From Setoptus koraiensis (lineage: Eukaryota; Animalia; Arthropoda): a stretch of 64,000 nt of DNA. The notes under the pieces are model-generated. The model ran no database searches and was not told where the DNA came from. It saw only the letters and a list, made by a program, of their open reading frames with translations. Below, in pieces: positions 1-64,000 of the stretch (positions are counted from its first letter, which is position 1; the number at the start of each line of letters is the position of its first letter). The stretch covers positions 8,494,001-8,558,000 of the forward strand of contig CM106585.1 in the NCBI GenBank assembly GCA_048013815.1. Reading direction: 5' to 3'. A program made the translations under genes and the position numbers.

Positions 1-138
1 GCCATGTCTGAATCAATTCAAAATGTATAGGTAAATAGTCTAAGTATTTACAACCTTTATTCAGCTATTGATTCTGATGAAAAACTGAGAAGATCAACTT
101 GTAATAGATCAATAGCATGGAGTATGTTCAATCGTTTA

Positions 139-6613: not shown

Positions 6614-7768
6614 TCAATTTGTTTTTTTAGTATTATGCTTGGGCTTAACGTCTACATAAGCATCAGGATTGCGCATTATCTTATGTGACAACTTGACAAA
6701 GTCAACATAGGCGAAACTTTTGGGTCCCTTATAAACTCGAGACATTGTTGGATCGCTGAGCTTGCTGCACTTTTGCTCGATGTGATTATTAAATAAAAAC
6801 ACGAATCTATTAATGATATTCGATTTGGCTTCCGACCTGACAGCAAACACAATGTCAGTGCGATATTTGTCTGAATCAAACCATTTGCAACGCTCATAAT
6901 CAGGTATTTTCGCAGGCCAAGTAAATGCCTCCATTTTATTATACCAATAAGGCGCTAACCACAGTAATTTTTTAATCTCTGAATCGCCTAGCATATCCTT
7001 GGCTTGCTTATATACTATTATGTTGCCTATATTTTCAGAGATCAAATTAAACGTATCTATATGATTTGTTTTGTCCTTCTTAGATACGCTTCTCAATGTT
7101 GTAGCTTTATCTATTATAGCAAGAATCTCAGGATATAATTTTTTATCTAGATTTTGGATTGTCGTCTTCAGCTGAAACAAATTTTGCATCATTGCATACA
7201 AGTTAACAGCCGTCAATAAGGCGGGTTTCTTCAGTAGTTTACACACTTCACCGACAGTCTTGACAGCTTTCTGAGCTTTTTCTATTGTGAGAGCCTGATT
7301 GAGAGCACCATCGCTGGCCTCCAATAAATTACATTTATAAATGGAAGTAGAAAACTTGTCGTTGCTACCGAATAACTCTTTAGCAACTTGCCTAAGTCTG
7401 TTGGCCTTGTCCACCATGCAAATACATTCGGGATGACCCGACATGGACTTATCAGAATCTGTGTGGATGTAGTTTGTTTTGCTTGATGGTAGTAGTAGTT
7501 TGTTTATGCGAATTTTGTAATCCATCAATAAGTGTGATCTGACACATTGGTCCCTGCACCAATTCTCAAGACTGTCTCTAGTTTTCATAGCAATAATCTC
7601 TTGAATTGAAGGAATAAAGGAGTACGCTAATGACTTGATGGCCGACACTTGAGTTGACTTTGTCAATAACACAATGCTGCAAACAAACATCGTGGCCACT
7701 GTTACATAATATGATTTAAATCTAAACACGGGACAGAATTTCCTATTTTTCCTGTTTGACTTTGTCAT
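6614..7768 (-). CDS. Uncharacterised protein (384 aa from first ATG 7768; 358 aa from ATG 7690), possibly secreted
   Basis: Uninterrupted 1.2-kb ORF in AT-rich DNA. The hydrophobic segment MFVCSIVLLTKSTQVSA resembles a signal peptide. Several Cys; no recognisable family motif. Confidence 0.6.
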   Translation of the reverse strand: MTKSNRKNRKFCPVFRFKSYYVTVATMFVCSIVLLTKSTQVSAIKSLAYSFIPSIQEIIAMKTRDSLENWCRDQCVRSHLLMDYKIRINKLLLPSSKTNYIHTDSDKSMSGHPECICMVDKANRLRQVAKELFGSNDKFSTSIYKCNLLEASDGALNQALTIEKAQKAVKTVGEVCKLLKKPALLTAVNLYAMMQNLFQLKTTIQNLDKKLYPEILAIIDKATTLRSVSKKDKTNHIDTFNLISENIGNIIVYKQAKDMLGDSEIKKLLWLAPYWYNKMEAFTWPAKIPDYERCKWFDSDKYRTDIVFAVRSEAKSNIINRFVFLFNNHIEQKCSKLSDPTMSRVYKGPKSFAYVDFVKLSHKIMRNPDAYVDVKPKHNTKKTN

Positions 7769-8718
7769 GGTGCTGACCTGATTGGCTTGGCAGACAATCG
7801 AATTAATCAGTAATAGTTTTCTCAAACGAAAGAGATGTTATTCGAGCAGGCAAAACACATGCCGAATAGTTAGATTTACTCTTTTCTGGCAATAGTGAGC
7901 AATTAACAATAAAGAGGGATCTCATCTTCTTGTTATTTTCATATAGTGTTAGGCTTAACACGCAATAGCTACTCACCTGACACCATTCTATTACTTTTGT
8001 ACCCTAACATGAGGCAAAGGTTTGGATGGAATATTTTTAGATCTAATAGAAAATGGATGTATGTACTCAAAGGTTTAGCCACAATTGTATCGAAAGTTGT
8101 TGTTTTATCTCATAAGAATTTGGAGAACAGAAGAAAGCGGGAGAACGCGACAGTACGAGCTGATTGGGAGTCGCATCCCTATTATCATTTTGGGACCACT
8201 GTTCCATAGTCATCGATCTTACTGGATTTTTATCGAAACACTATATCATACTCAAGAGTCAAGCTAGTTATGGAGGTTAGTTCACTCACTGGCATGCACA
8301 ATAGAAACTATTTATATTCTGGCTTATAACCGTAATCGTACCAATTCATGTGTGACGTCCCAATCAATGATCAATACTATGAGCAGCAACAATAGTGTGA
8401 ATGAAAATAGAATAGATGATTCAAGTGTTAAATCTGAACTTCGTTCAATCTTCACCTATGGAAAATTTTAATCAACTTCTAGATGAGCAAACAATCAAAT
8501 ATAATATTATTATTACTTTCTACACAAGCGATTAATGATTCACGAAAGTATTGACCTTAATTGATTGATTGAGTGAATAACTTATTTGAACCAATGTTGA
8601 TATAACTATCTTCCGATTGACCATTTCCAATAATCGATGAATTCTATCACATCACTACTTATGATTATCATTTCTGACTGAATGGTTGAAGATTGTGATA
8701 TATCGTAAATGTCATACA

Positions 8719-10161
<1,443 letters not shown>

Positions 10162-10731
10162 TTAAACGAATAATTGTATCATAGGAGGTTCGCCAAGAAT
10201 CCAAATGGAATCGGAGCACAAATCTAAATGATTATATCAATTAATATATAATAATAGCTACTTGAAGATATTTATATCGATGTATTGATAGTAAGTGATA
10301 ATAATGATTGAAGAAAGGGATTCTATTCATACAATAACAACAATTGAGAGATTCAGCTAAACGAATTGTTGTCGATAGCAATTGTCTACACTATTAGTAT
10401 GTATTAGTACGGAAATTTGTGATGATGAAGTAGCTGATTTGTACAGGGAGATGATGATGTCTGGGATGGATATAGACACAGGTCTTTGAATCAAATTAAT
10501 GCCATTGTAATAAATGATTATACGGATACCCACGGCCACGGTACAGGATCATTTTTTTTATTATTTTCGCATTTGGATGACTATTTTTCGCGAATACTTT
10601 GTGAATATTGTGTGTGTGTGGGTTCATAGGGTGTTCTTCTGTTAGGCAAGCGAGATGCAGAACAATCCATATTCCGAGTGAATCTTGTGCCGTCTGTTAT
10701 TTTCAGTGCAATTCCTCTGTGGAGATGCGTT

Positions 10732-11174
10732 TGTCATGCCCGTCTACCAATACCCGACCGCACACGCCCATTCTCACTCATACCCAGTATCCGCATGATA
10801 TGAGTACGTGCGGTACTTACATCGATTTCATGTAAGGATGCAATCTATTGATGTCGAAAACATTGCTACATCATCCCATGCTTAAGTGGACACAAAATGT
10901 CCGATTGGTTCATGAGAATTACGTACGCAAAAACACCTTAGTGATATTCGATACATTACACATCTAGCTCTCGATCGATACGCACTTAAAAATAAATCTA
11001 CATTGAAATTAATCAATCACGTAAAATAGAAAATTATTATATTGCAAATTACCTTAATTAATAGCTGCTAAACATATTTGTCCAATCAGATCATAAAATT
11101 CTAAGTCCCACTACCCACACGCGGTACCTTTTTATTCACGTCGTACCCGAACTTCTCTGCTGTTCGGCACGACA
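10732..11174 (+). repeat. 5' LTR (443 bp)
   Basis: Starts TGTCATG and ends CACGACA (imperfect terminal inverted repeat). Direct repeat of 19579-20021 differing at 10778, 11075, 11087, 11107, 11118 and 11132. Confidence 0.97.
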
Positions 11175-11176
11175 TT

Positions 11177-11194
11177 TGGTAGCAGAGCGTGGTT
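11177..11194 (+). promoter_or_regulatory. Primer-binding site, tRNA-iMet type
   Basis: TGGTAGCAGAGCGTGGTT starts 2 nt after the 5' LTR. TGGTAGCAGAG is complementary to the conserved 3' end (CUCUGCUACCA) of animal initiator tRNA-Met. The full 18-nt match depends on this species' tRNA-iMet, which is not in the window. Confidence 0.8.
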
Positions 11195-11261
11195 AGCTAC
11201 ACGGTCCGAATAAAATAACCAGAAATACCTCAAAAAGAAGATAAATATCATCAAGCTCATC

Positions 11262-12383
11262 ATGTCCAACGACACCTTTGTAAATCTCTCCGAAACCGCT
11301 ATCAATGATTTGGCCTCGGCCTTCAACCAGAATCAGACACTTCTATTGTCCAACTTGCCTCGTTTTGGCGGTTACAAAGACGAGAACGCCACCGAATTCC
11401 TGAGAGAATATAAGAATAAATTGATAACAGCGACCGATAAGATGCGATGTCTTGGATTCCGAGTTGCACTGACAGGCCCAGCATTGGTCTGGTCAAAAAC
11501 TCATCTAAAGAACGATATTGCGAATAGCGATTGGACAACAGTGAAGAAGAAGTTTAATCAACGATTTTGCGCTGATCAAACTGAATATAAATACCAGAAT
11601 AAGCTAGATTCAATGAACTACAATCCAGAAGGAAAACTGTCAATTACTTCGTTCGTTGAAGAGTTTATCGATGCGTATAAAAAAGTGAATCCTTCTACGG
11701 TCTGCAATGAAGAGTACGAGAAGCGCATAATACGAGCTGCGTATAATCGACTTCCTGATACCGTCAAAGGTCAGTTGAATTCAATTTCAAAGCTAACCGA
11801 TCTTAGATCGACCAGCGACTTCATCAAAGAAATTCAACACTATGAGAATGAAGTCGAGAGATACATTAAACAAGACAGCAAACCGGACCCCAAGTCCATG
11901 CTCGAGATAATCTCAGCGATGCAAGAACACAACACAAAAGCTCTAAAACAGGATATCCAAGACTTAAAGAAAGCCATCGCCTCACCAGCAGTATACGGAG
12001 CCGCTGGTCGTCAGGATTATCCCAGACCGAACTATCCTAAGATGCGTGACGGAAACTCCGACAGAAAATATAAGAAACCGTATCGACATTTCGACAGGAA
12101 TGTCCGTGGCAGATACGAAAACAATCAGCACCGCTACAACCGATATGAGCAACAACCTTTTCAATGTAGACAAATCGATCAAGCCCCGGCGCAGCTGGCA
12201 TTAAAATCAGAGGTACATAAAGTCACATCTCCCGAGACAGACAAGAACAGTCCTGCCATAATCGAGTATGAACGTATTCATGGCAAAGTTCCTGCACCTT
12301 GCAAATACTGTGAACAACATCACTTCAACCGACACTGCCCGTATAATCCAGAGAATTTAAAAGAACAGGGGTGCTCGAAATAA
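11262..12383 (+). CDS. gag: Retrotransposon Gag, 373 aa
   Basis: First ORF after the PBS; retrotransposon capsid-like region (LPRFGG...ATEFLREY...ALTGPALVW); basic/Gln-rich region; zinc knuckle CKYCEQHHFNRHC (CX2CX3HX4C). Confidence 0.9.
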   Translation: MSNDTFVNLSETAINDLASAFNQNQTLLLSNLPRFGGYKDENATEFLREYKNKLITATDKMRCLGFRVALTGPALVWSKTHLKNDIANSDWTTVKKKFNQRFCADQTEYKYQNKLDSMNYNPEGKLSITSFVEEFIDAYKKVNPSTVCNEEYEKRIIRAAYNRLPDTVKGQLNSISKLTDLRSTSDFIKEIQHYENEVERYIKQDSKPDPKSMLEIISAMQEHNTKALKQDIQDLKKAIASPAVYGAAGRQDYPRPNYPKMRDGNSDRKYKKPYRHFDRNVRGRYENNQHRYNRYEQQPFQCRQIDQAPAQLALKSEVHKVTSPETDKNSPAIIEYERIHGKVPAPCKYCEQHHFNRHCPYNPENLKEQGCSK

Positions 12384-12400
12384 GAGACGATTCAGCACCC
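12356..12400 (+). promoter_or_regulatory. -1 programmed ribosomal frameshift signal (slippery heptamer + stem-loop)
   Basis: T TTA AAA at 12356-12362 in the gag frame. After a 6-nt spacer, GGGTGCT (12369-12375) pairs with AGCACCC (12394-12400). The pol frame is -1 relative to gag and is open only from 12347. Confidence 0.85.
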
Positions 12401-15400
12401 ATCTATAAGATTTCAAGTCTCAACTCCAACACGAAACTTGTTATTGTGAGACTTATGGTTGGACAATTAGAAATATCCGCAGTAGTCGATACTGGGGCTA
12501 CAATATCCTTTATCCCAGCGAAAGGTTTAATCGTTTCCCTATGTAGACCAAGATTGGATAAAGAGAGAGCCAGAGTACAAGCAGTTGATAATACGTGGTT
12601 CGAAGTGGGACACACCGCAGATATACCTATTAGACCCTCAGCACTGAAAATGGATCCAATTATGTCTAAGGTACTCGTGGTGGACGATAGATCTGATGTC
12701 ATTGGACATGATATGATTCTGGGGTTGCCAGACATAAAAGCCTTCGATTTCGTAATGATGAATGTAGACGGTTTGATAACGGTTTTCAAAAATAAACAAG
12801 TCATCGGTCGAGAAGAAGTGCAGCAAAGTCAACCCGACGCTTTGGGAGCCTCTTCTAAAAATCTCGACTTGGCTTTTGACCCATACATTGATGAACGTCG
12901 TAAAGTGCTTAATATAGTCTACAATTTCGAAGAGGTGTTCGTCGAATCAATCGCGACACATATATCCTGCGAACCTATGAAGATAAGTCTCAACAGTAGC
13001 TGGCGCCCTAAACAAAAGTTGAGAAGACACAGTCCAGAGGATATAAGTGAGATGCGAAAGCAAGTTGATCGCCTCCTTGCAGCTGGTATAGTTGAACCCT
13101 CATTCTCAGACTTCTCTTCCAACGCCAGACTGGTGCCGAAAAAGAACGGTCAAAAAAGAATGGTCGTCAACTTTATACCTCTCAATCGAATAACAATTCA
13201 GGACAATTACCCTCTTCCTAGGGTCGAAGACCTATTTTTGTGCCTAAAAGACGCTAAATTCTTCAGTGCTATGGATTGCACTGAAGGATTCTTTCAGATA
13301 CCTCTAAACCGAGATGACTATCATAAGACCGCGTTTCTCACACCTTTCGGCCTATTTCACTATACAAGGTGCCCCTTTGGCCTAACCAATTCGCCTGCAG
13401 TGTTCCAACGTGTGATGAATAATATATTCGAGAAAGAGATCTATAAATCTTGCGTTATATACGTCGACGACATTCTCGTATTCGGATCAACAATTGAGGA
13501 GCACAACGAACGACTAACATCAGTCTTGAGAAAATGCAAGCAGTATAACCTGAAATTGAAATTATCTAAATGCAAATTCCTTCAGCAACAAATTGAGTTC
13601 TTGGGCCACATTATCACGGAGAATCATATTGCACCAGTAAAGGGGAAAACAGACCCAATCTATTCATTGAAACCTTCTAATAAGACAGATATTCAAACAA
13701 TCCTTGGAACCGTCAATTACTATGCCCGATTTATTCCTTCCTATCCAGAAGTAACCGCTCCATTAAGAGAATTAATCAAAGACAATGTACCTTTCATCTG
13801 GTCAGAACAACACATTGATACTCTAATGAATATAAGGAAGTGTCTGGAAAATGCCGAGCCACAAGTCATACCGTCATCAACGGAGCCTAAAATAGTTGAG
13901 CTACTAACAAATGAACGTACCATCGAAGTATCGTGCTATAACAAAGGTTATCAATTAATATCACGTGCTGGTCAGGTCTTAACAACTTCGCAAGTTAATT
14001 ACACGAGCATTGAGAAAACTCTACTGTCTATGATCTTGGCTCACAAAAAGTTTGGTATATTTTTACCTCCGGACAATACCACCTACATTAGTTCATGCAA
14101 AGACATCAACAAAATCCTCGATTTAAACGAGTTACCACCTCGTATAGAGAGACTGATCATTCGTCTCCCACCGAATTTAACTTTAAAGTTTACATTGAGA
14201 GAACCTGACTCGGTATCTTACATCTCAACAAAGTCTGAAGTACCGCCTGAAGAAATTTTCAATACAGATGGGGCCTGCTGCGGTAATGGCACCAAAATGT
14301 GCAAAGCCTCCTGGTCCGTCTGCCCCACATTTAATAAATCTCTCACTAAATCCGGTATTGTCGAAGACCCTAAACCATCTAACCAAGTTGCCGAATTGAG
14401 AGCAGCCATTGAAGCTGTCAGAATAGCTAAGGCCAATAACCTCAAGAATATTGCCATCCGTTCTGACAGTAAGTATGTTGTCAATTCTATCAACAAATGG
14501 ATACCCAACTGGGAAATTAATGGATACAAAGACAGTAAGAATAAGGAAGTCGTCAATGCCAAACTCTTGAGAGAGTTGGCCCACTTATTGAAGGAAATCA
14601 ATGTAAAGTGTTACCATATAAAGGGTCATTCAGGCGATGAGGGAAATGAGTCAGCCGACATACTAGCCAAAGAAACATTAGAAGAACATCTACATAAGTT
14701 ATGCCTCGCTGCACCTATTACGATCAATTCTCTGGACTATGATGAAGAGTATGAGAAACTTAAGGATATTGCCCAGAAAGATCCGGATTCGAATTACAGA
14801 CTCATCAACAACACTCTATACTTCCGCGATGTTCGAGCCAAAGAACCGGATCAGCTAAGATTGTTCTTGCCTACATCCAAAAGAGTGCAAGCTCTGTATA
14901 CTGCACATGATGATATGTTATATGGAGGGCATACAGGTGTAAAAAAGACTCGAGACAAACTTAGGGATGTCTATTGGCCTGGCATGTCAACTGATATTGA
15001 AAGATACATTAAAACATGTGACACATGCCAGCGATACAAAAATCCAAAGACTCTGCCGTATGGATTACTCCAGCCTATTCCTTCATCGGAAATTGGACAA
15101 AGGGTCCATATTGACATAGTCGGCCCACTCACACAGACACAAAATGGCAATCTCTACATTCTGACCGGAGTAGACGCCTTTTCAAGGTTTGGTTTTGCAC
15201 GCGCCGTCTCTAGGATAAGATCAATCGAGATCGAGGACTTCATCAATGAAGAAATAGTTGCAAAACACGGCCCACCTGCTGCCATAGCATCGGATAATGG
15301 AAAACAACTTGTTTCAAAACAGATTCTGGACTACATGGAAAAGTATAAAATTGAAGCTTTTCATACGTGCCCGTATTGGCCTCAAGCCAACGGCATGGAT

Positions 15401-17047
15401 GAACGTTTTAACGGAACTCTTGTCAAAATACTACGCACATACGTAGACGCTCACCAACTCAATTGGGACAAGATGTTAATTTATGCTCTTTTCAATTATA
15501 ACACTACTACTAATCAATCTACCAAGTATAGTCCTTATATTTTAATGTACGGTTTTGAACCGAGACATCCTCTAAAAGAACCAGCGACCATCAATACAGA
15601 GGAAATCGTACCTCTACTCACAGAGAGCCGGGATTGGGTCCGACGGAATGCTAAAGACAACATTGAAAGTGCCCAAATGATCCACAAATATTACTACGAC
15701 CGTAAGCACCAAGAACAGGACTTCAAGATCGGCGATCTTGTCCTACTAAAAACTCATGCAGTGCCCAGTAACTTATGCAAAAAGTTAGCGCACCGATGGT
15801 CTGGTCCGTATGTAGTTGTGAAATTCATCATTAAAGATGGTCAAAAGAGAGCCTTGTTGATTGGTGATCTCACCAATTTTACGATGAAAAGAGCCCCCTT
15901 TGGGGAAGTAAAACATTATCATGTTCGTAGAGATGAGAATGAAACTGATGAAGATTTAGCAGTTTACTACAATAACCTGCATAGAGAATCCTCGCCTATG
16001 CCGGTACTTCAGGTATCGAGTTCTGATCCTGGCCAGATTGGAAACGTACCAGAGGGTAGAGCAGACGGTCAGGTCATTCCTATGCAGACGTTACATAACA
16101 CAACGGTCAGTCCACCTGATGCAGTTGTTCATAATACACATGAACGATCTCTAACACCTGCAGGGTTAGAGTCCATGATACTAAATGATGGCCGAACTCA
16201 TGATCGGTGGCAGGTCTTCACAGACACTGTCCCCATGCAGTTAAATACAACCGGCCAGTCACTCGTTGACAATACGTTAAGCCATGATAATCGATGTCAC
16301 CTACCCAGTGACTCCATGCGATTACATGATAATCGATGTCACCTACCCAGTGACTCCATGCAATCACATGATAATCGATGTCACCCACTTAGTGACTCCA
16401 TGCAACCACATGATAATCGATGTCACCTACTCAATGACTCCATGCAAGCTCATGATAATCGATGTCATCTGAGCAGTGACTCCATGCAATCTCATAATAA
16501 TCAGTCACTCGCTGACAATACCCGAGCTCATGATCGATGTCATCTGATCAATGACTCCATGCAGCCTCATAATAACCAGTCACTCGCTGACAATACCCAA
16601 GCTCATGATCGATGTCATCTGATCAATGACTCCATGCAGCAGAATATTGGACAGTCACCTGTCAATAATATTCCTAACTATAATAATCAATCTCTCCTTC
16701 CGATTGACCCCACTCAACAGAATAATGAGAAAAGTCTGGACAACCGGATAGAACCTGCCGAGTCTACATTGAATTCAGCTCTAGAAAATGATAACGGTAT
16801 CGAAAACATCGTCCCCGACGTAATCAATGATAACGCTAACGAACTGTCCAACAGATTAGAAATTCAAACTGTGGCCGATCCCACAGAAATGAGTATTGTA
16901 ACAGGTAGTCAAGACAATCTTTCCTTACATAATAGTACGCCTACAAGCATACGCTCACCGCGAGCATCGTCGACACCACAACCAACGCGTTATAATTTGA
17001 GAAAAGCAGGCCAGATAAGACTACCCAGAAGATTTAATAATGACTGA
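12356..17047 (+). CDS. pol: Retrotransposon Pol (PR-RT-degenerate RH-second RNase H-IN-C-terminal repeat tail), likely expressed as Gag-Pol by -1 frameshift
   Basis: Protease VDTGA (12488); RT YVDD (13460); intact RNase H D/E/D/H/D at 14267/14393/14465/14627/14657; integrase HHCC from 14906 and D-D(35)-E at 15113/15293/15401; GPY motif about 15800; no internal stops. Confidence 0.95.
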   Translation, partial: FKRTGVLEIRDDSAPIYKISSLNSNTKLVIVRLMVGQLEISAVVDTGATISFIPAKGLIVSLCRPRLDKERARVQAVDNTWFEVGHTADIPIRPSALKMDPIMSKVLVVDDRSDVIGHDMILGLPDIKAFDFVMMNVDGLITVFKNKQVIGREEVQQSQPDALGASSKNLDLAFDPYIDERRKVLNIVYNFEEVFVESIATHISCEPMKISLNSSWRPKQKLRRHSPEDISEMRKQVDRLLAAGIVEPSFSDFSSNARLVPKKNGQKRMVVNFIPLNRITIQDNYPLPRVEDLFLCLKDAKFFSAMDCTEGFFQIPLNRDDYHKTAFLTPFGLFHYTRCPFGLTNSPAVFQRVMNNIFEKEIYKSCVIYVDDILVFGSTIEEHNERLTSVLRKCKQYNLKLKLSKCKFLQQQIEFLGHIITENHIAPVKGKTDPIYSLKPSNKTDIQTILGTVNYYARFIPSYPEVTAPLRELIKDNVPFIWSEQHIDTLMNIRKCLENAEPQVIPSSTEPKIVELLTNERTIEVSCYNKGYQLISRAGQVLTTSQVNYTSIEKTLLSMILAHKKFGIFLPPDNTTYISSCKDINKILDLNELPPRIERLIIRLPPNLTLKFTLREPDSVSYISTKSEVPPEEIFNTDGACCGNGTKMCKASWSVCPTFNKSLTKSGIVEDPKPSNQVAELRAAIEAVRIAKANNLKNIAIRSDSKYVVNSINKWIPNWEINGYKDSKNKEVVNAKLLRELAHLLKEINVKCYHIKGHSGDEGNESADILAKETLEEHLHKLCLAAPITINSLDYDEEYEKLKDIAQKDPDSNYRLINNTLYFRDVRAKEPDQLRLFLPTSKRVQALYTAHDDMLYGGHTGVKKTRDKLRDVYWPGMSTDIERYIKTCDTCQRYKNPKTLPYGLLQPIPSSEIGQRVHIDIVGPLTQTQNGNLYILTGVDAFSRFGFARAVSRIRSIEIEDFINEEIVAKHGPPAAIASDNGKQLVSKQILDYMEKYKIEAFHTCPYWPQANGMDERFNGTLVKILRTYVDAHQLNWDKMLIYALFNYNTTTNQSTKYSPYILMYGFEPRHPLKEPATINTEEIVPLLTESRDWVRRNAKDNIESAQMIHKYYYDRKHQEQDFKIGDLVLLKTHAVPSNLCKKLAHRWSGPYVVVKFIIKDGQKRALLIGDLTNFTMKRAPFGEVKHYHVRRDENETDEDLAVYYNNLHRESSPMPVLQVSSSDPGQIGNVPEGRADGQVIPMQTLHNTTVSPPDAVVHNTHERSLTPAGLESMILNDGRTHDRWQVFTDTVPMQLNTTGQSLVDNTLSHDNRCHLPSDSMRLHDNRCHLPSDSMQSHDNRCHPLSDSMQPHDNRCHLLNDSMQAHDNRCHLSSDSMQSHNNQSLADNTRAHDRCHLINDSMQPHNNQSLADNTQAHDRCHLINDSMQQNIGQSPVNNIPNYNNQSLLPIDPTQQNNEKSLDNRIEPAESTLNSALENDNGIENIVPDVINDNANELSNRLEIQTVADPTEMSIVTGSQDNLSLHNSTPTSIRSPRASSTPQPTRYNLRKAGQIRLPRRFNND
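16283..16642 (+). repeat. In-frame coding minisatellite in the pol tail: 5 x 42 bp, then 2 x 75 bp higher-order units
   Basis: Unit CATGATAATCGATGTCACCTACCCAGTGACTCCATGCAATCA encodes HDNRCHLxSDSMQx. It is followed by two alternating 36+39-bp units (HNNQSLADNTxA / HDRCHLINDSMQx). Confidence 0.92.
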
Positions 17048-17133
17048 CCATCCTATCATCTATCTACTCAATATGCCATTAATACTTACATTGAAAGAGA
17101 CTAATAATGCATAATTCTTCGATGAAACTCTAT

Positions 17134-17139
17134 TTTATT
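17134..17139 (-). promoter_or_regulatory. Candidate polyadenylation signal (AATAAA) for the antisense ORF
   Basis: TTTATT on the + strand, 22 nt past the stop of the 710-aa minus-strand ORF, in the AT-rich 114-bp spacer between the two convergent stops. Confidence 0.45.
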
Positions 17140-17161
17140 TAATGCTTAAGAACGATTTAAC

Positions 17162-19294
17162 TCAATTGTCCACGAGGACATCTTCTTCTCCCTCTATTTC
17201 GGTTTCACTACCACTCTCATTAGTGACATATCGAACCTTCACAACCTTTCTCGCATCACCTCGGTGCCCCATTCTGATGTGTCTATAAACCGAGCACAAT
17301 GAACTCGAATTGGGAGGTGCCTTGAATCGCTTCGGACAAAACGGACACTGGTCCAAGGCAATCACATAGTGATCAATTGTCGGCACGTTTAATACTGGCA
17401 AGGCATATTGGGACTGGCTGAACCCAGAAGCATTCAACATGCTGTTTGCCTTAGCCCGAGCCAGTATCAAATAGTGGACCATAAAGCTGAGTAAGGCTGA
17501 AGGATAAATTAATTTCTCCGGCAACCTTGGGCACCTGTCCATATAATCCAAAATCGTTGTCAAGGAGACGAACAAGTGCACGACGTCAGGAGCATAGGTT
17601 GAATTGATTATGCTACATTGGAGGTGATGAAATTCAACTGATTCGGGCAAACATTTGGCCAAGGACGCTTCGATGTAATTTCTGACAACATCGTGCTTTT
17701 TCAGCAGGTTGTCCTGGCACAAGCTCAAATATTCCTGATTGGCTCTGTCCAATATTATTTCTACCGGGACACCTTCAAAGTCCTCTTCTTTAATTACAAT
17801 AATTAGTAGAATGAATCTCTCCTTAGGCACCATATCGGTTAAATCAATGTAAGAATCGCGGCCATTAACGTCATCCAATGGAAGGAAACCCAAGTCCAGA
17901 TCAAGTCTCTCGTGGAATGCTCTTTTATAGGATTCAAAGAACGAGTCAACGTCTTGAGGAGAAATCTCTAACTCAACACCGTCATTGGATGGCTTTAACT
18001 CGATGGCTGGAAAGGAGTAGTACTTCGAATATTTATAGTTCTTGATGAGATTGTTCATCAACATTGAATAATCCGTGTTACTTTGAATTGAACTTCCTTG
18101 GGATAACGAAGTAAAGGATAACGTCCGTTCTTGAAACGGGTCCGAGTAATTTTCTCCAGGCATAGGAAATGATGGCGCTGGGGTGGTGTCATCCAGTAAC
18201 TCATCGGTCGGTTCAGGTTGGGTTAAAGGACAACCTAAACTCCTCATTCGAACCGACGAAGACATGCTTTTCTGAGAAGAAGATGTTGAGCACTGAGTGG
18301 AAAAACCTTCCATTAGGTCCATTGCTTCGTTGTCTTTTCGAACTCCTGTAGTCAATGGATCATCGTCAGATTTCACTGAGAGGATATCGGCCGGTTCAAA
18401 TCTTAATACCGTCGCAGGAGCTAATTCGTACATTAGCATCGCTATATAGCCGATATCGTTTTCGCCACAATGTTCAACGGTACCATTATAACGTGAGACG
18501 CTGGCTGTATCTATCTTAAAATCAAGGCAACACTCGAAGTCGAATTTAATATTATGGAAGTCACTTTCATATTCAAAGAAACGCTCATGACCAACCAGAA
18601 GATTCAAGTGGACATGTTTTCCAATGGTTATTACACCGTAAAACCAATGTTGCTGATAATTTAAGATGATGCCACTCTTTAAATTCTGCTTGAAGACAAT
18701 TTTTGGTAATTTCCCTTGGATAATATCGTCAGCGTTGACAAAATGACGCTTATCATGAAGTAATAATAATGGAAATCGACCACCACATGGAATACCAATG
18801 AACGGATCTCCGGTTCCGATTACCATTGAGGATTCTCCATCGAGGCGTATTGATATTGTACCTACATACTTTTTGAACAATTCGTCTACGGTTGTTCGAG
18901 TCAGGAACTCTAATAATATACCATGGTCGTAACAAAAATTTTGTCCACCGATAATATTGATTATTCCTAATTTGTTCCAGTTGCGAGGCTGACCAATCTG
19001 CTTGGAGATATGGAATAACTCCGGCGACAAAATATACCTGGCATCTTCTCCCATGTAAATAATGAATAATCCTTCGAGACGGTTGGCCTTCTTATCCTTC
19101 ACCATGACGACAGCATATGGTCTTTTGTGGACTCCTCGTCGGCCAAAATAACTTAGTATATCTCCCGACTCTTCAAGCAAATATGACGTCGATGTAGAAA
19201 TTCGAGTCTTCAGTACTCTAAAATTATACAGTCCACGACCTGCCAGGCGGGCTCTCAACATTTTTGTTATTAATACTCGTTTTGCTAGCTCCAT
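17162..19294 (-). CDS. Retrotransposon-borne antisense ORF of unknown function, 710 aa, with C-terminal C2H2-like zinc finger
   Basis: Uninterrupted 2,133-bp ATG-initiated ORF between pol and the 3' LTR, not overlapping pol. Contains CPFC-x18-H-x4-H and an acidic tail. No signal peptide or clear TM anchor seen. Confidence 0.85.
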   Translation of the reverse strand: MELAKRVLITKMLRARLAGRGLYNFRVLKTRISTSTSYLLEESGDILSYFGRRGVHKRPYAVVMVKDKKANRLEGLFIIYMGEDARYILSPELFHISKQIGQPRNWNKLGIINIIGGQNFCYDHGILLEFLTRTTVDELFKKYVGTISIRLDGESSMVIGTGDPFIGIPCGGRFPLLLLHDKRHFVNADDIIQGKLPKIVFKQNLKSGIILNYQQHWFYGVITIGKHVHLNLLVGHERFFEYESDFHNIKFDFECCLDFKIDTASVSRYNGTVEHCGENDIGYIAMLMYELAPATVLRFEPADILSVKSDDDPLTTGVRKDNEAMDLMEGFSTQCSTSSSQKSMSSSVRMRSLGCPLTQPEPTDELLDDTTPAPSFPMPGENYSDPFQERTLSFTSLSQGSSIQSNTDYSMLMNNLIKNYKYSKYYSFPAIELKPSNDGVELEISPQDVDSFFESYKRAFHERLDLDLGFLPLDDVNGRDSYIDLTDMVPKERFILLIIVIKEEDFEGVPVEIILDRANQEYLSLCQDNLLKKHDVVRNYIEASLAKCLPESVEFHHLQCSIINSTYAPDVVHLFVSLTTILDYMDRCPRLPEKLIYPSALLSFMVHYLILARAKANSMLNASGFSQSQYALPVLNVPTIDHYVIALDQCPFCPKRFKAPPNSSSLCSVYRHIRMGHRGDARKVVKVRYVTNESGSETEIEGEEDVLVDN

Positions 19295-19569
19295 TTATAA
19301 TTAATATTGGATAGACTCTCTTGGAATGGATTGATATGGATGAACGAATGATTTAAATCACGAAAATCGGATATGCGTTGTGAATTTAATGTAGCAAAAG
19401 ACTGAATGTCCACAGACGCCAGAAAACCGTTATTAACCACTGCACCACGTGGTTAAGATGCCGTACAAGGTTTCCCCAAATTTCTCAAAATAGAGTTTTG
19501 TTGGGGTTTTAGCCCAGTTAAACGGCCATTTCAGGGTATTATCTCGACTCAAAATCGTCGTAGATAATT

Positions 19570-19578
19570 GGGGTGGAA
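19570..19578 (+). promoter_or_regulatory. Polypurine tract (short)
   Basis: GGGGTGGAA immediately before the TG of the 3' LTR. Confidence 0.6.
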
Positions 19579-20021
19579 TGTCATGCCCGTCTACCAATAC
19601 CCGACCGCACACGCCCATTCTCACCCATACCCAGTATCCGCATGATATGAGTACGTGCGGTACTTACATCGATTTCATGTAAGGATGCAATCTATTGATG
19701 TCGAAAACATTGCTACATCATCCCATGCTTAAGTGGACACAAAATGTCCGATTGGTTCATGAGAATTACGTACGCAAAAACACCTTAGTGATATTCGATA
19801 CATTACACATCTAGCTCTCGATCGATACGCACTTAAAAATAAATCTACATTGAAATTAATCAATCACGTAAAATAGAAAATTATTATATTGCAAATTACC
19901 TTAATTAATAGCTGCTAAACACATTTGTCCAATAAGATCATAAAATTCTAAGTACCACTACCCATACGCGGTACCTTTCTATTCACGTCGTACCCGAACT
20001 TCTCTGCTGTTCGGCACGACA
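19579..20021 (+). repeat. 3' LTR (443 bp)
   Basis: Direct repeat of 10732-11174 (437/443 identical), followed by TSD CGTT. Confidence 0.97.
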
Positions 20022-20296
20022 CGTTCACCTAGGACGGCACAGTGAGCATCTATTCATGAATATCGTGATTCGCATACTATATTCACCATCACACATCAAA
20101 ACATATGCGCTCAGAGTGAACAAAATCACGGATTGTCGACGCGCTCACTCCATATGAAATGCACTGCAGTTTATTAGCGAGTATAGCTTGCTCGTCCTTC
20201 AGCAGAAGCCACTCGATCTCTTTATATATCACCAATTCATTTTCATCATTGTCTTTTGATTGATATTATATAATCGGTTTACTATATTTGACGTGA

Positions 20297-21899
<1,603 letters not shown>

Positions 21900-22091
21900 T
21901 CATGTTGATGTGAATAGAATAAATTCTAAATACAAGGTTGTTTCGCTTGCGATCAACATAACCATTGTGGCTTTTATTCAGTTTGGTTCGGTTGGAATAA
22001 AACTAGAAACTACTTTATTATTAATATCTAATCCAAAATGTCGTCTTTGAGTTGAAATAAAACTGTAATCTGATGCAGTAAGAGCATCTAA

Positions 22092-22164
22092 GTTTCCGTA
22101 GTGTAGTGGTTATCACGTGCGCTTCACACGCGCAAGGTCCCCGGTTCGAACCCGGGCGGAAACA
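22092..22164 (+). tRNA. tRNA-Val(CAC)
   Basis: GTTTCCGTAGTGTAGTGGTTATCACGTGCGCTTCACACGCGCAAGGTCCCCGGTTCGAACCCGGGCGGAAACA; cloverleaf with anticodon stem TGCGC/GCGCA around TT-CAC-AC; A and B boxes. Confidence 0.97.
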
Positions 22165-22174
22165 TTTTTTTTTT
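22165..22174 (+). terminator. Pol III oligo-T terminator of tRNA-Val
   Basis: T10 directly after the discriminator base. Confidence 0.85.
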
Positions 22175-22675
22175 GCGCCTGTCTCAAGCTAGTGTTACGC
22201 AACAGCAAAAGAATACAACCTGGAAAAACCCTTATAATCCTAGCATAAATTTCAAATTTGTGCACATGAATTTATAAATATTAACAAATTGTATTGAAAA
22301 GGCAATCGAAGCTAGCTAGACTTTTTTCCTCATTTTACATAGTATGATCACCAATAATTATAGGGTTCTCTATAGACTATTTGAACAATTCACCAACAAA
22401 ATCCGCGATTAATATTGATACACTTGCAGTATCCACAGAGATATAGAATTTTCAATAAAAAAAGTTGGATTCTAAGTATAGGTGAATGCAGTGAGATTGA
22501 AGAGCTCCAAAACTTTCTAACGTCATGCTATTTTTAGAACAACTTCTGCTTGGAGATTAAAGTTTCAATTTGGGATGAAGAAACCGAATCAAGCGATTGA
22601 TTGAATCAAGGGACTTTAGGGAAAATTACTTTGAACTCGAGCACTAAAAATTAAAAAATAAGGTCCAAAAAAGTT

Positions 22676-22747
22676 TGCGTTAGCCGGGAATCGAACCCGG
22701 GTCCCGTGCGTGGCAGGCACGGATCTTAACCACTGGACCACCAACGC
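22676..22747 (-). tRNA. tRNA-Gly(GCC)
   Basis: Reverse complement GCGTTGGTGGTCCAGTGGTTAAGATCCGTGCCTGCCACGCACGGGACCCGGGTTCGATTCCCGGCTAACGCA; anticodon stem CGTGC/GCACG around CT-GCC-AC; T6 terminator at 22667-22672. Confidence 0.95.
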
Positions 22748-22894
22748 AAGACGATAAGAAAGAGTGGATGTCAGGACATTACATTGTCTAAGGCAGAGAC
22801 AGGACAAATGAGCAATATTGTGATATATCTCATGTATTTTTATATTTGAAATTATTTATTTAAACGACATCCGATTCTTAGTAATTCGAATTCG

Positions 22895-23563
22895 ATGTAT
22901 CCAGAGATGCAAAACTTTCAATGGAATTCTCAATTAAGAGACCTCCTCAAAGAAACTAGGGATTTAAATAAAGAGCTTCATGCAAAAAAAGAGGAATGTG
23001 ATTCTGTTTTGCAATCTATCGCCTCAACTATCCAACCAAATCTGCAGCATGTGACCAAGCACAATGAATATCCCCCCAGATTTTATGAGTATATCATCGA
23101 GATCAGAAAGATTATAGATGATACAAGGGGCAAACTCATAAAAAGTTCAGTGTCTCATGAATGCTTCTTTGACAGCTCAAGCATTTGCGTACCCGATCTA
23201 ATATTTCCGGATAGCGGCATTAGTCAATGTATAGTACAACTGTGCGAGCTCATTTCATTAATTCTTATAGACATTGAAGAAAACGGAGATCAAACAGAGG
23301 AGATGAGGAAGCTCAACGCAGACAAAACAGTTGTCATGGTGTTGCAATATTACATTCTCGTCGGTCCTATCGTGTTCAAGGAGGCAACAGAAAATTTCCC
23401 TGACGATCAAGGAACCAGATACAGCAATGATTATATGTTCTTGAAACACTTCATAAAAAATCTACAGTCATCCAGTAGGAGTACCGAAATGAAAAGAGAA
23501 CTTGGCAACATACTAGCCGCTATGACTTTGCAAGAGCGTGAAAGGTTGGAATATGTAAATTAA
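22895..23563 (+). CDS. Uncharacterised helical protein, 222 aa
   Basis: ATG-initiated 669-bp ORF with a coiled-coil-like N-terminus (LRDLLKETRDLNKELHAKKEE); AATAAA near 23590; no family recognised. Confidence 0.55.
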   Translation: MYPEMQNFQWNSQLRDLLKETRDLNKELHAKKEECDSVLQSIASTIQPNLQHVTKHNEYPPRFYEYIIEIRKIIDDTRGKLIKSSVSHECFFDSSSICVPDLIFPDSGISQCIVQLCELISLILIDIEENGDQTEEMRKLNADKTVVMVLQYYILVGPIVFKEATENFPDDQGTRYSNDYMFLKHFIKNLQSSSRSTEMKRELGNILAAMTLQERERLEYVN

Positions 23564-23700
23564 ATTACAAGATGATTAAAATTTAATCAAATAAATCTGT
23601 TTGTCGTTAGTTTGGAGCATTTCTTAACATGATTCTTCAAGAGTTGTCCAACACAATGTTTCCGAGCGATCCACTTGTGGTTAAACTTTCTCTCGTCTGA

Positions 23701-26541
23701 CTAATTCAAGTATTTCTGACAATTCGGCGCGCGACAATTACATCGAATCTTCTCTTCTATGGGCAGATCTTCACGAGGAAATTTGTAGTCATAGGTGATT
23801 TCCTCCTCTTCCTCAATGGTTTTACTTGCATATATTACGATGGCGTTTCCTTGCCCATTATCGTGCCGAATAACCTTGGCTATACAGTTAGGATTGCAAC
23901 TGTGATTTATGAATCTGGCCTTGTTACCCTTGAGTGTAGCATCTATAACTTGGTCGTCAACTCTGAAGAAATATGAACTTCCGTCGTGTGTCTTCAAGCC
24001 AGCATAAACCTTCTCGCGGTGATCAGCTAAAGATGGTCGAATTTTTTCGCCCACATACTCTATCACAGCTGCACCATTCGCAATCTTCTCACATGCGAAC
24101 AATCCCCATTTGTGTATCTTACTAAGAGAGAACCTCAGGTTCTTTGAGCGAATTTGCAAACTACTGAACATAAATCTCATCATCGCTGACCCGAGTGTTT
24201 CAGCATGAGCCACGGCGAACCTGCGCTGTTCACCTCGAAGGTCACTCCTTGATGAGCTCTTTACTTGTGCCCTCGATTTTATGGGAGCCTTAGAGAGATC
24301 TTCATCAACCTTATCGCCCTTCCAAACTTTCGATCCATCTTTCTCCCTCGGGAATCCATCACATCTTGAGCATCCTTTCCACCATGTTGGCGAATCACTT
24401 TCGTCATCTTTTTTATCTTTACCTTTTTTCTTCTTATTGACTTGAGGCTTGACTACTGGCTTAAATGGCAGATGAGCTCTATTAACGTCTTCTGATCCCT
24501 TTGAAGATCCTTCCAACATGCCACTGTAAACAGGATTCTCGCACATCTTGTCGTAGGCTTCCATGAGGAACTTGAAAGCTTCTTCATCGATGCCAATAAT
24601 ATCATCGATGATTCTGCTCTGCTCTTCTTCACTTCTTACATCAAAAGAAAACTCTGGAATATCACGTAATTTGTCTAAATCACCGGAGTCGTGCTTGATT
24701 CGTTTGTATTGTCGTTTAGTGGGTGGAAAGTGCTCCTCAAGAACTTTCCTCTTATTATTCGTTTTCACAATAACATCTTCATCTTCCGAGTATTCCATCA
24801 TCTCATCTATGACGCCGTCTTCTTTCTTGATTGATACCGTATTCTCGGTAGAAACGGTAGAACCAAGAGTTGCCAAGATTTGAGCCACCTCGCCTTCTTC
24901 TTCAGATCTTAGTCGCGTCTCTCTTGGGGTGGGGCGAATTTCGGAAGGTGCTTCAGGAACAAAAGGCACAGCCGATATACGAGGACTTAAATTATCCAAT
25001 TTCTTCTGTGAGGTCGTTAAGCCAGACGATGAAGAACTATCGTAGGATGATTGATCAGAGGAATCATCTGAATCTGAGTCAGATTCCGACTCGGATGACG
25101 AGGAGTCTGATGATGAGGATGATAGCGAAGTCGTATCTCTGAAATTTGTTGCTGAGCCTGCTCTAGAAGTTTGCTTTGGTTGCTCGGATGACCATGCAGC
25201 TGACCTATTCACTCTCCTGATTATATTCTCATCTGTTGTGTTTCTTTTGCCAATTGAAACTGTGTTAGAAGTTCGCCTATTGATGAAAGCATGTGGTAGA
25301 CTGCGCCGGTCAGGCACTGTGTTTGTATAGTTTGATCCCAAAACGTTTTGAATCAATTTATGATTAACTGGTTTTATATCCTCACTTTTCTTTCTCTCTA
25401 AAGAAGTTTTTTCATACTTGGCTTTTTCTGCGTCAATAAGAGGATAACCAACTTGCTCAAGAATACATTTGTGAAAGTGTTTCAAGAGAGCCTCTCTACA
25501 GGTATTTTCAAATATCTTATACAGCTCATACAGTTCTTTCTGAATCTGGGATCTAGTTAGATCTTTTGGTAATTCCCTCTGAGCGACACTCTTTTCTTCG
25601 TGATTATCGAAGGCATTCTGTTTCCTGGGTGGCGTGTTTGGTCTTTTGCGGTGATTGTGGTGATTATCCTCTTTACCACTATAGTCACGATGATTGTTCC
25701 AATCATTATGACTATTGCGTTGATTACGTTGATTGTAAGCATCTTTTCTGATTTCATTGTTGAATGATGGAAGTACATTTTCGATAGGAGATGGTGTCCG
25801 ATTGTGATAAGTCAGTTTGTTGTATTCTGGAGGGAAGATTTGATTCTTTTCATTGTGGTTGGGCATTAAACATTGCGCTAGACCCGAATTGTTATGAAGA
25901 AGAAAATTAATTCTTTCATCTAATGAACGAAATTGTGGTTCTTTACAAGTGACACCATTAGTTGGTTGCATGATCGATGGGAATTGAAGATTCGGCAGAA
26001 CTGTTGGTGGTATCAACGCCTGATGAGCAGGTGTTGTTTGTTGATTTGTTGGTGGGTGGATTATATTCTCTCTGATGGCGTTGATTTTAGTAAATCTTGG
26101 GTCGAGAAAGACAGATAGTTTCTTACCCATAAAACTCTTTTCATGGAATTTGAGTACACACTCTTTGGCATCTATAACCTTCTCAAATTGTACTTTTGCT
26201 ATACCCAAATGTGTATTATCAATTGGATGATGCAAAACATCACAATGTGAAACCTTTCCGAATTTTGATAGTTCTTTCTTGAGGAAATTATTATCAATGT
26301 TATCATTGAGATTATTAATAGATACTTGCACATCTGGCGGAACTCCAACGTAATTATCGTCAATCATAAATTTAGGTTTCACCAGATCAATATCTTTGGA
26401 GAATTTTGTCCGAGAGGAGCCTCTATATTTGATACTAGTTTCACGGGGATCAATAGTACTATCATGTTCGGAAATATTCTCTAGGGGTATGACCCTTGCG
26501 AGAGGTTTAGATTGCTGCCGTTGTTGTGGTGTAACGCTCAT
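23701..26541 (-). CDS. Set1: Histone H3K4 methyltransferase Set1/SETD1, intronless, 946 aa
   Basis: N-terminal RRM; Ser/Asp-rich region; n-SET with WIN-like GCSRCDG and RxxxRR (RGEQRR); SET domain (IEYVGE, RFINHSCNPNC, EITYDYKF); post-SET CNCxxxxC; C-terminal YLN. Confidence 0.95.
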   Translation of the reverse strand: MSVTPQQRQQSKPLARVIPLENISEHDSTIDPRETSIKYRGSSRTKFSKDIDLVKPKFMIDDNYVGVPPDVQVSINNLNDNIDNNFLKKELSKFGKVSHCDVLHHPIDNTHLGIAKVQFEKVIDAKECVLKFHEKSFMGKKLSVFLDPRFTKINAIRENIIHPPTNQQTTPAHQALIPPTVLPNLQFPSIMQPTNGVTCKEPQFRSLDERINFLLHNNSGLAQCLMPNHNEKNQIFPPEYNKLTYHNRTPSPIENVLPSFNNEIRKDAYNQRNQRNSHNDWNNHRDYSGKEDNHHNHRKRPNTPPRKQNAFDNHEEKSVAQRELPKDLTRSQIQKELYELYKIFENTCREALLKHFHKCILEQVGYPLIDAEKAKYEKTSLERKKSEDIKPVNHKLIQNVLGSNYTNTVPDRRSLPHAFINRRTSNTVSIGKRNTTDENIIRRVNRSAAWSSEQPKQTSRAGSATNFRDTTSLSSSSSDSSSSESESDSDSDDSSDQSSYDSSSSSGLTTSQKKLDNLSPRISAVPFVPEAPSEIRPTPRETRLRSEEEGEVAQILATLGSTVSTENTVSIKKEDGVIDEMMEYSEDEDVIVKTNNKRKVLEEHFPPTKRQYKRIKHDSGDLDKLRDIPEFSFDVRSEEEQSRIIDDIIGIDEEAFKFLMEAYDKMCENPVYSGMLEGSSKGSEDVNRAHLPFKPVVKPQVNKKKKGKDKKDDESDSPTWWKGCSRCDGFPREKDGSKVWKGDKVDEDLSKAPIKSRAQVKSSSRSDLRGEQRRFAVAHAETLGSAMMRFMFSSLQIRSKNLRFSLSKIHKWGLFACEKIANGAAVIEYVGEKIRPSLADHREKVYAGLKTHDGSSYFFRVDDQVIDATLKGNKARFINHSCNPNCIAKVIRHDNGQGNAIVIYASKTIEEEEEITYDYKFPREDLPIEEKIRCNCRAPNCQKYLN

Positions 26542-29072
26542 GGTGAGTTGCTTTGTAATTGGATAATATTATAGCTAGAATATACAATTTATATAATATA
26601 ATAATGTGATACTAATATTATAGTAATATTAATATTAATAATAGTGTAGATGGTGAAAATATTGATTACGGCAATGACAACAATATAAATGGTCGTTGCA
26701 TTAAAAAATTTGTCTAGTATATAGAGAAATAGCACTATCAGTAGTGGCAGTGTAGTAGAAAATATATACAACACTCCAAATCATCTTGTACCACTCGGAT
26801 TTGAGCTGCGAGCAGGAGGCTCACAGCAACCATTCCAGGCCCAGGCAAGGTAGTCTTGTGCGCGTTGGGCACGCCGTAGTAGGGCACTCTCTGATACTGT
26901 GCCCTACAGGCGCCCTTTAGAGAGCCACCAATTGAGAGCCGCAGGTGCAATCATCATCTTGCCACGATGAACAATAATTGTAAATGTGACAGATATTAAT
27001 TAGTTTGTTAATTAATATCATCATTTTTGCCTTTAATGTCGGTCACATGTCGCGGCCGCGCACATTTGCGGGTACTACAGGGTATACCCGTAAGCGTGTG
27101 TCTCTACTACCTGTAGTGGTTGGTGTCTATGTTTAGTTGTTGCCCTGTGTTTATGTGCTTGTGCTTGCACATATGACAATCCAATAGTTTTGTTCCGTTC
27201 CATTCTAGTGCGCTTAATACAGCTCATAGTGGCCTGAAAGTGAAAATCTACGTTCAAACGCACGCACAAGCTAGTCGCAGTACAGGGTGTAAATCTACGA
27301 ATGAAACGCGCGGTGCAAAATCATATCGCTTCCACTGTGCCAAGCGAAAGTAAATTATTCACACACCGTGTAGGGTGTCTCTCTCTCTCTCTCTCTAATA
27401 TAGTGTGTCACACAAATCATAAGACCGCTGCCGCCGCTGAATACAACATGTTTGATTACAAGTGTTTGATTAGACAACGATTGAATGCGCACTTTGTCAC
27501 TGATCGCCAAATGTTTGCTGCTCCACACATTATCAGACGCTCTGTATCACTCTTTTATCCACATATCCACATACTATATCTACGGCTTCAAATGAATGAA
27601 TGCAAGGTGATTTGCAGGTCGTCTTAAATTATTAATTAGCGATTGGATAACCTGGCAAGATTGTTTGAATTTCTCATCTATGGGTGTGTGTGTGTGTGTC
27701 TGCGTGGTGTGCTCATGTGTGCCCATCGAAACACCTAGACAGCAGATAGTCAAGGCGCTTGTTTACTGAAAATAATCAAATTAAATAATTTATCCACCAT
27801 GATCTATATTTGTTAGCTTGCTAGCCAACAGTGGCAGCTAACTGTGTGTATGTCTGATTGTGTGTCTGTGTGTTCGTGTGTATGTGCGTCTCTCCTTAGA
27901 ATGTCCGTTGCGAAGCTTAGCTCGTTAGCGCCTAGCAACGGTTCTATTATGATAGCGACGAACCACCACTCTCAACTGACTGGGCGCCAGGTTGACCAAG
28001 TGGTCGTCATCATCATTTGTGTGAAGTGTTGAAGCCTAAATTCATAAGGCTACACAACGAGAACATGAGACAAGACAGCTCCCGGGGACCCAAATATAAC
28101 AAGAGAGGCGAATAAGGCGACGATAAGGACGACGATAACAACGGCGACGTGTTTGCATAGGATTTCCGTCGCCAGTGGGTAGCTCTTGTTGTTGCTAGTT
28201 GCCTATTTAGAGGGTGGCTCATATTGTTATTAATACATACGCGATGTACATTGCAAATATGTGATGATCTGAAGGTTTTCAACGTCTGCCAGTCACCCGT
28301 TTGTCTGTCTACCCGTCTATCTGCCGTATGCTTGTCTATTTTTACTACATTTTATTATTGTTCATGTATTTTCTACAAGTATACGAATTTAAACCTAAAT
28401 ATTATGTTATTATTATTATACATGATTGTTTTCTTTCTATTAATTCCAGACAATATAGTAGACCTCATATATCGTATATGCCTCTAATATCTAGGATATT
28501 TGGAGGTGTGTCTATATTTTGTTTTATTTATGTAATAGATTTTATGCGGTTGCTTCTGTTTAGCGTGCGTTGCAGGGCGTAAGTCGTCATTTATTCTGTT
28601 TAGGCCACTGGGTGCAATCGCACTCTAATATTCTCTGTGCCAGTTCTTTGTAAACACAAAGCTGAGAATCGTGTTCGTGCGTATTTCGATAAGTCTTGTG
28701 CGAATCGTCTGCGTGTGTTGTGCCAAAAGCATAAACATCCATACAGGCTCAAAGTGATGATTCAGTCTCATGTGCTGTATCTTGTGCTTATCTGTACAGG
28801 TCACGCACACGTGAGTTTGTGTGCGTGCGCACAGACGATCGTAAAGTAACAAGATTTCATAGAGCACCGAATTCATGTTAACGCGCCCATTCTATCAACA
28901 GCTATGCGCAATTTAGCTATCGAAGCGCAACTTTTAAATAAATTCAAAATCTCTGTCATCACGGATACTTCTACCACATTCCCGTTTTCTGTCTTCCGCC
29001 TGTCAAGAGGTTTCCTTTGCTCCCCATCTATCGCCACCACCCGTGGACCCTCGTGCCATTTAGAGCAAGCAC

Positions 29073-32711: not shown

Positions 32712-47437
<14,726 letters not shown>

Positions 47438-63840: not shown

Positions 63841-63905
63841 CACAACAACAACAGCAGCAGCACAACAACAACAGCAACAACAACAGCAACAACAACAGCA
63901 ACATC
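63841..63905. repeat. (CAA/CAG)n trinucleotide repeat
   Basis: About 20 CAA/CAG triplets in GC-rich non-coding DNA. Confidence 0.85.
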
Positions 63906-64000
63906 AGCACCCAAATGGTCAGCGCTGCTGCTTTGTTGCCTACGCCCTACAGCTGACCAGCAGCTCTACCGGCCCCACCGGCCTCGTGGGCCCCATTGGG

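Follow-up and report, generated by a model that had tools for sequence, protein, structure and literature searches.

The window analysed here, a stretch of 64,000 nucleotides from Setoptus koraiensis (GenBank assembly GCA_048013815.1, contig CM106585.1, positions 8,494,001 to 8,558,000 of the forward strand), contained an apparently intact 9.3-kb Ty3/gypsy long terminal repeat (LTR) retrotransposon at window positions 10732-20021. Between its pol gene and its 3' LTR, the element carried an intact open reading frame (ORF) on the opposite strand, which started with ATG and encoded 710 amino acids (aa; 17162-19294, minus strand). The ORF listing, a shuffle test and relatives in other elements showed that this antisense ORF is a genuine gene, belongs to the element lineage and has been under long-term coding constraint. 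With a probability of roughly 0.6, it is the third gene of an animal Ty3/gypsy lineage and encodes a protein with a clan CE fold that acts on, or binds, ubiquitin-like modifications. A clan CE (Ulp1/SENP-like) fold was predicted for residues 1-310; beyond it lie a disordered linker, another conserved domain and a single C2H2 zinc finger.

Coding status and conservation of the antisense gene

The ORF had been described as a 2.1-kb stop-free gene in an earlier note on this DNA, and the description was reproduced. No internal stop was present in the 710 codons, whereas each of the five remaining frames contained 34-50 stops over this length. When the region from pol to the LTR was shuffled 2000 times, the mean length of the longest stop-free run was 97 codons and the maximum 212. 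The length of the antisense ORF is far beyond chance. The ATG was located 284 bp from the 3' LTR, and the ORF converged on pol, which ended at 17047, leaving 114 bp from stop to stop. Within this gap, an AATAAA signal on the minus strand (17134-17139) began 22 nt past the antisense stop. All of these distances agreed with those given before. The 284-bp spacer upstream of the ATG (19295-19578, minus strand) is a candidate promoter and leader, and its final bases on the plus strand comprised the polypurine tract. A scan for promoters and terminators of the bacterial type, which is not relevant to a eukaryote, stayed at chance level. The 64-kb window held no second copy of the antisense gene. The protein showed neither a signal-like start nor a membrane anchor, with a top 19-residue hydropathy mean of 1.45. 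Together with the opposite orientation, this upheld the view that the ORF is not env-like.

Homologues in other elements, for which a search had been proposed, were identified in an exhaustive HMMER search with the antisense protein against 1.84 billion representatives. It returned 10 related proteins, five of which were full length (637-720 aa). These five originated from independent public contigs and showed 20-33% identity. Since all relatives were at most 40% identical, synonymous sites are saturated. Each of the five full-length relatives converged on a pol-like gene on its own contig. The long contigs L001, L002 and L004 (three of the five) encoded the same set of pol domains, including an extra RNase H, and the short contigs L003 and L006 held just the cut end of the convergent gene. 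Identity of pol to the window element was 50% for L001, 39% for L004 and 34% for L002. The corresponding values were 31%, 20% and 23% for the antisense protein and 46% (on a fragment), 25% and 23% for gag, indicating that the antisense gene diverged together with the element, at a pace close to that of gag. Similarity at the nucleotide level between the window element and its relatives was lost everywhere except in the reverse transcriptase (RT) region. In the protein alignment of the six full-length members, the start methionine and 24 further columns were invariant.

The gene was intact in six of nine copies. In one relative, two frame changes divided the ORF into three pieces; another lacked the start and was split once, and the contig of the ninth copy was too short for a judgement. 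Retention of the gene in five other diverged elements bore out the proposal of a genuine antisense accessory gene of the retrotransposon. It also ruled out a fragment of a host gene captured in this copy alone, the outcome named earlier as one that would overturn the proposal. As the diverged relatives kept the gene convergent with pol, chance, one-off capture and nested insertion of a foreign element are excluded.

The relatives that were looked up were all single-member clusters from raw-read assemblies and none was named in public protein sets, so routine annotation misses this gene family. Among the relatives of the antisense gene, both the nearest (L001) and one that is broken (L005) came from the sequencing run SRR33593474. 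Word-index protein searches with the antisense protein and with the six-member alignment gave no matches, and no relatives were present in the JGI metagenome contigs or the IMG/VR viral contigs. Terminal repeats were not found within the contigs of the relatives. The suggestion of a captured viral or host gene gained no support, as word-index, PDB sequence, JGI metagenome and IMG/VR searches revealed no donor gene for the antisense ORF.

Predicted fold and possible role of the protein

The full-length AlphaFold2 model, built on an alignment of 11 sequences, comprised three confident blocks (residues 1-150, 205-310 and 440-625) and three stretches of low confidence (residues 153-202, 321-404 and 631-710). 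A separate AlphaFold2 model of residues 1-320 had a predicted local distance difference test score (pLDDT) of 73 and a predicted template modelling score of 0.74. The layout proposed earlier stood with regard to the linker, the alpha/beta domain, the zinc finger and the acidic tail. It did not stand for the N-terminal 300 residues or so, which had been taken as simply beta-rich; the N-terminal 310 residues were mixed alpha/beta in the AlphaFold2 models.

The putative clan CE domain (residues 1-310; 18365-19294, minus strand) contained a disordered insert at residues 153-202. It was followed by a linker rich in Ser, Thr, Pro and acidic residues (residues 311-439; 17978-18364, minus strand) with a pLDDT below 50 for residues 321-404. 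Across the family, the linker varied between 86 and 148 residues in length, yet Ser, Thr, Pro, Asp and Glu made up about 45-50% of it in every member. The AlphaFold2 model and the family alignment delimited a second conserved alpha/beta domain (residues 440-625; 17420-17977, minus strand), in which Arg493, Asp516, His573 and Pro592 were invariant. The single C2H2 zinc finger (C-x2-C-x18-H-x4-H, residues 650-677; 17264-17347, minus strand) was followed by the acidic tail. Its ligands Cys650, Cys653, His672 and His677 were invariant in the six proteins, and with 41% mean pairwise identity, compared with about 20% elsewhere, it was the best conserved part. Matches of the finger sequence remained below threshold, with an E-value of 0.11 in Pfam and 0.034 for a solved ZFY-type finger. 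The three folded parts were not similar to one another in a profile-profile comparison, and an internal duplication into repeated protease-like modules was dropped as a candidate on that result.

The earlier note had suggested AlphaFold and Foldseek as a check. Applied to the N-terminal half, this check gave a predicted clan CE protease fold, which the note did not contain. In Foldseek searches of the PDB with both models, clan CE cysteine proteases were the sole coherent group of matches, including XopD, SENP2, SENP5, SENP8, the YopJ-family members PopP2 and AvrA, SseL, pS273R of African swine fever virus (ASFV) and I7L of poxviruses. The probabilities of these matches were 0.85-1.0, with best target template modelling scores of 0.41-0.47 and E-values of about 1e-2. 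The remaining matches had low probability and very large root mean square deviations. In the viral library of Foldseek, entries for Ulp1/SUMO proteases of large DNA viruses were retrieved. The residues His216, His236 and Cys276 were invariant in all eight sequences covering the N-terminal half. In the model, His216 opened a strand, His236 was positioned just past the next strand and Cys276 lay three residues ahead of a helix. We take this order on strand, strand and helix to be the geometry of the clan CE triad, and on this placement the three residues appear to sit at the triad positions. The structural matches suggest, with moderate confidence, that residues 1-310 adopt a clan CE fold.

Several observations weighed against this assignment. 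The acidic or Asn residue of the triad was replaced by the invariant His236, and no Gln for an oxyanion hole was conserved ahead of Cys276 in the six-protein alignment. For these two reasons, classical protease activity seems doubtful. Pfam indicated no protease even at an E-value of 10, whether the whole protein, family members or N-terminal halves were searched, and for the six family members at E-values up to 1, nothing beyond the sub-threshold finger was matched. The family profile retrieved the finger alone from PDB sequences, and a search of the PDB with the single sequence was blank. The Foldseek E-values were weak, and the alignments behind the models comprised 8-11 sequences.

A course of action can be proposed for the favoured reading, a clan CE-fold protein directed at ubiquitin-like modifications. 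Transcription of the antisense gene would start at a promoter located either in the 284-bp spacer or, as the earlier note proposed, in the neighbouring LTR, and the transcript would end at its own AATAAA between the convergent stops. The product is predicted to be a soluble 710-aa protein with a clan CE fold, a disordered linker, a second domain and one C2H2 finger. It may recognise, and possibly remove, SUMO, ubiquitin or NEDD8 attached to proteins of the host or of the element, with the finger and the second domain tethering it to a partner or to nucleic acid. The gain for the element might be relief from modifier-dependent silencing or help in nuclear steps. The roles named in the earlier note, such as a transcriptional regulator or an anti-silencing factor, are conjectural. 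An antisense message, fully complementary to the genomic RNA, should be costly to the element, and that the gene is nevertheless kept suggests a real advantage. A further-reaching version seems rather unlikely. It holds that an animal lineage encodes an antisense protease for ubiquitin-like modifiers with a His-His-Cys centre, serving in counter-silencing, and that together with a captured RNase H1 this defines a new clade. If it were true, the antisense modifier protease would be a dedicated counter-silencing gene directed against SUMO- or ubiquitin-dependent control by the host.

The invariant His that takes the place of an acidic residue in the triad and the lack of a conserved Gln near the Cys would also fit a pseudo-enzyme. 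The clan CE fold would then serve as a binding module, the His-His-Cys group would perhaps hold a metal, and the protein would work through its finger and second domain, as an adaptor or a regulator. The finger being the most conserved part of the protein agrees with this. However, a His and a Cys at the nucleophile positions that stay invariant across 20% identity are typical of a working centre, and we regard the pseudo-enzyme as a possible, though less probable, explanation. The matches to poxvirus I7L and ASFV pS273R raised the question of a maturation protease that replaces or supplements that of the element. Clan CE proteases have this function in adenoviruses, poxviruses and asfarviruses, and it has been proposed for non-LTR elements of the NeSL type; NeSL/Utopia elements carry an Ulp1-like domain (PMC4640811). 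Such a role is quite unlikely, as the pol of all four elements compared kept the D-T-G-A motif of retropepsin and its partner motif. The antisense protein would moreover be made from a separate message, outside Gag-Pol.

An effect of the antisense RNA itself, by pairing with genomic RNA or by feeding small RNAs, would leave the ORF incidental. A minus-strand message would be complementary over its whole length to the sense RNA in its 3' part, and antisense RNAs of retroelements are known (PMC7264820). Nevertheless, selection at the RNA level alone is insufficient, since six intact ORFs of 637-720 codons with 20-33% protein identity and invariant residues persisted while nucleotide similarity was gone, which makes this explanation very improbable. 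The readings as a recently captured host gene, as a nested foreign transposon and as a chance or env-like ORF had in their favour the position where env would lie and nothing more. They are hardly credible given the gene at the same place in diverged elements, its single occurrence in the window, the lack of a signal peptide or membrane segment and the result of the shuffle test. The reading as a clan CE-fold protein of the element lineage, acting on or binding ubiquitin-like modifications, was preferred.

The carrier element and its genomic surroundings

The element was bounded by two LTRs of 443 bp, the 5' LTR at 10732-11174 and the 3' LTR at 19579-20021 (both plus strand), with TG...CA ends and 437 of 443 positions matching between them. 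Beside both LTRs, an identical target-site duplication of 4 bp was present, the left copy at 10728-10731 and the right copy at 20022-20025. A primer-binding site read from the sequence began with TGG two bases past the 5' LTR (11177-11192, plus strand). Together with the polypurine tract and with gag preceding pol, these features are those of a Ty3/gypsy LTR retrotransposon, and no gene was interrupted in the window copy. The gag gene encoded 373 aa (11262-12383, plus strand) and was recognised by the Pfam model Retrotrans_gag with an E-value of 1.2e-05. Positions 12300-12362 (plus strand) covered both a variant zinc knuckle at the C-terminal end of the protein, C-x2-C-x3-H-x4-C, and a slippery heptamer (12356-12362) inside the overlap with pol. 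Since pol was in the -1 frame relative to gag, the heptamer is a candidate site for a programmed -1 frameshift.

The pol gene (12371-17047, plus strand; 1558 aa as listed) was annotated by Pfam matches and showed the order retropepsin motif, RT, gypsy-type RNase H, a second RNase H of cellular type, integrase and a long, repeat-bearing tail. The retropepsin D-T-G-A motif and its partner motif were invariant across four diverged elements. The second RNase H followed the gypsy-type domain at pol residues 629-769 (14255-14677, plus strand), and its best solved match was the human cellular RNase H1 with an E-value of 1.9e-22. The same Pfam domain was also present in the related elements on L001, L002 and L004. 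A dual RNase H layout is found in plant Tat elements and retroviruses and was apparently acquired independently in this arthropod lineage. The tail past the integrase comprised about 360 residues, with in-frame tandem repeats of 42- and 75-nt periods (16241-16640, plus strand). It had no similarity to related elements save one weak match of 54 residues to the end of the pol on L003.

The genes flanking the element encoded the glycosylphosphatidylinositol (GPI) transamidase Gaa1, a major facilitator superfamily (MFS) transporter, an AGC kinase, a pyridine-nucleotide disulphide oxidoreductase and Set1-like and Set2-like proteins. The flanking genes at 139-10149 and 20667-31286 were single uninterrupted ORFs of 400-950 codons. 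Such intron poverty is unusual for an arthropod. The best named relatives of the Gaa1 ORF were from the acariform mites Dinothrombium, Halotydeus, Oppia and Panonychus, with 38-42% identity, and intron-poor, gene-dense DNA fits the streamlined type of mite genome (PMC7738191). On these features, the host resembles an acariform mite with few introns. A further contig of run SRR33593474, L007, was collinear with window positions 3-10227, comprising Gaa1, the MFS transporter, an unknown ORF and the kinase at 78-94% nucleotide identity. This collinearity indicates that the run derives from a close relative of the host. The contig stopped short of the insertion point of the element.

Two tRNA genes, tRNA-Val(CAC) at 22092-22164 (plus strand) and tRNA-Gly(GCC) at 22675-22748 (minus strand), were located some 2 kb past the downstream end of the element, and a protein gene lay in between. 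At this distance, integration targeted to tRNA genes is not suggested. A block at about 34000-46000 had a G+C content of 52-54%, compared with about 40% elsewhere in the window. It contained no ORF of more than 175 codons, and no Pfam match was obtained for the eight ORFs tried. Repeats in this block included an (AC)n run (36596-36698) and a repeat of 44 nt (40060-40163). At the right end of the window (62000-64000), the G+C content rose to 58%.

Comparison with known systems

Accessory genes distinguish complex retroviruses from simple retroelements. Among LTR retrotransposons, conserved antisense genes have been described mainly from plants, with brtn of the Boty elements as one fungal case (cited in PMC7264820), and none has an assigned function. 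In the present case an animal element lineage keeps an antisense gene, and the predicted fold provides a checkable lead towards the recognition or removal of ubiquitin-like modifiers. Antisense ORFs and Ulp1-like domains in mobile elements were already known. The combination of an antisense clan CE-like gene and a zinc finger was not found described for LTR retrotransposons. In the literature searched, no antisense gene of the clan CE type was encountered in such an element, and a recent survey of metazoan gypsy elements carrying env did not mention antisense genes (PMC13524379).

Antisense ORFs between pol and the 3' LTR are a hallmark of the plant Tat, Retand and Grande elements of the Ty3/gypsy group (PMC4408406, PMC7264820, PMC11963269). 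The likeness to Retand and Grande noted earlier was confirmed in position. The plant ORFs share the orientation of the window gene and are likewise conserved within their lineage without an assigned function. Retand/Tat elements also resemble the window element in a second RNase H and in tandem repeats near the 3' end of pol. However, plant antisense ORFs carry a Transposase_28 or plant mobile domain, neither of which was found by Pfam in the window family, and the window element has an animal host and an extra RNase H of the metazoan RNase H1 type. The absence of the plant domains and the type of this RNase H indicate that the likeness is convergent and not inherited. Transfer of a Tat-like element from plant to mite was considered and rejected on the same RNase H.

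The antisense bZIP protein of deltaretroviruses is another minus-strand accessory protein near the 3' LTR of a reverse-transcribing element. The parallel drawn with it in the earlier note was valid for position only; Pfam showed no bZIP or other shared domain in the window protein and did not place it in another family. The env genes of retroviruses and errantiviruses differ from the window ORF in all respects compared, being on the sense strand and encoding a signal peptide and a membrane anchor. With SENP/Ulp1, XopD and the YopJ family, the window protein shares the predicted fold and the order of His, third residue and Cys on strand, strand and helix. It differs from them in a structural sequence identity of only 10-15%, in a His as the third residue and in the absence of a conserved Gln, and it adds a disordered insert of 50 residues, the second domain and the zinc finger.

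Domains of the ubiquitin-like-protease type have repeatedly been picked up by unrelated mobile elements. Ulp1-like domains occur in the NeSL and Utopia non-LTR retrotransposons and in Ginger1 and Mutator-type DNA transposons, where their role in the life of the element is likewise without assignment (PMC4640811, PMC2836005). Domains of that kind can be recognised from their sequence (Pfam Peptidase_C48) and are fused in sense orientation to the main protein. The window gene, by contrast, stands on its own on the antisense strand, escapes sequence profiles and encodes a His where the triad would have its acidic residue. If it represents another independent case, it would strengthen the idea that elements and their hosts are generally in conflict over the ubiquitin-like pathway.

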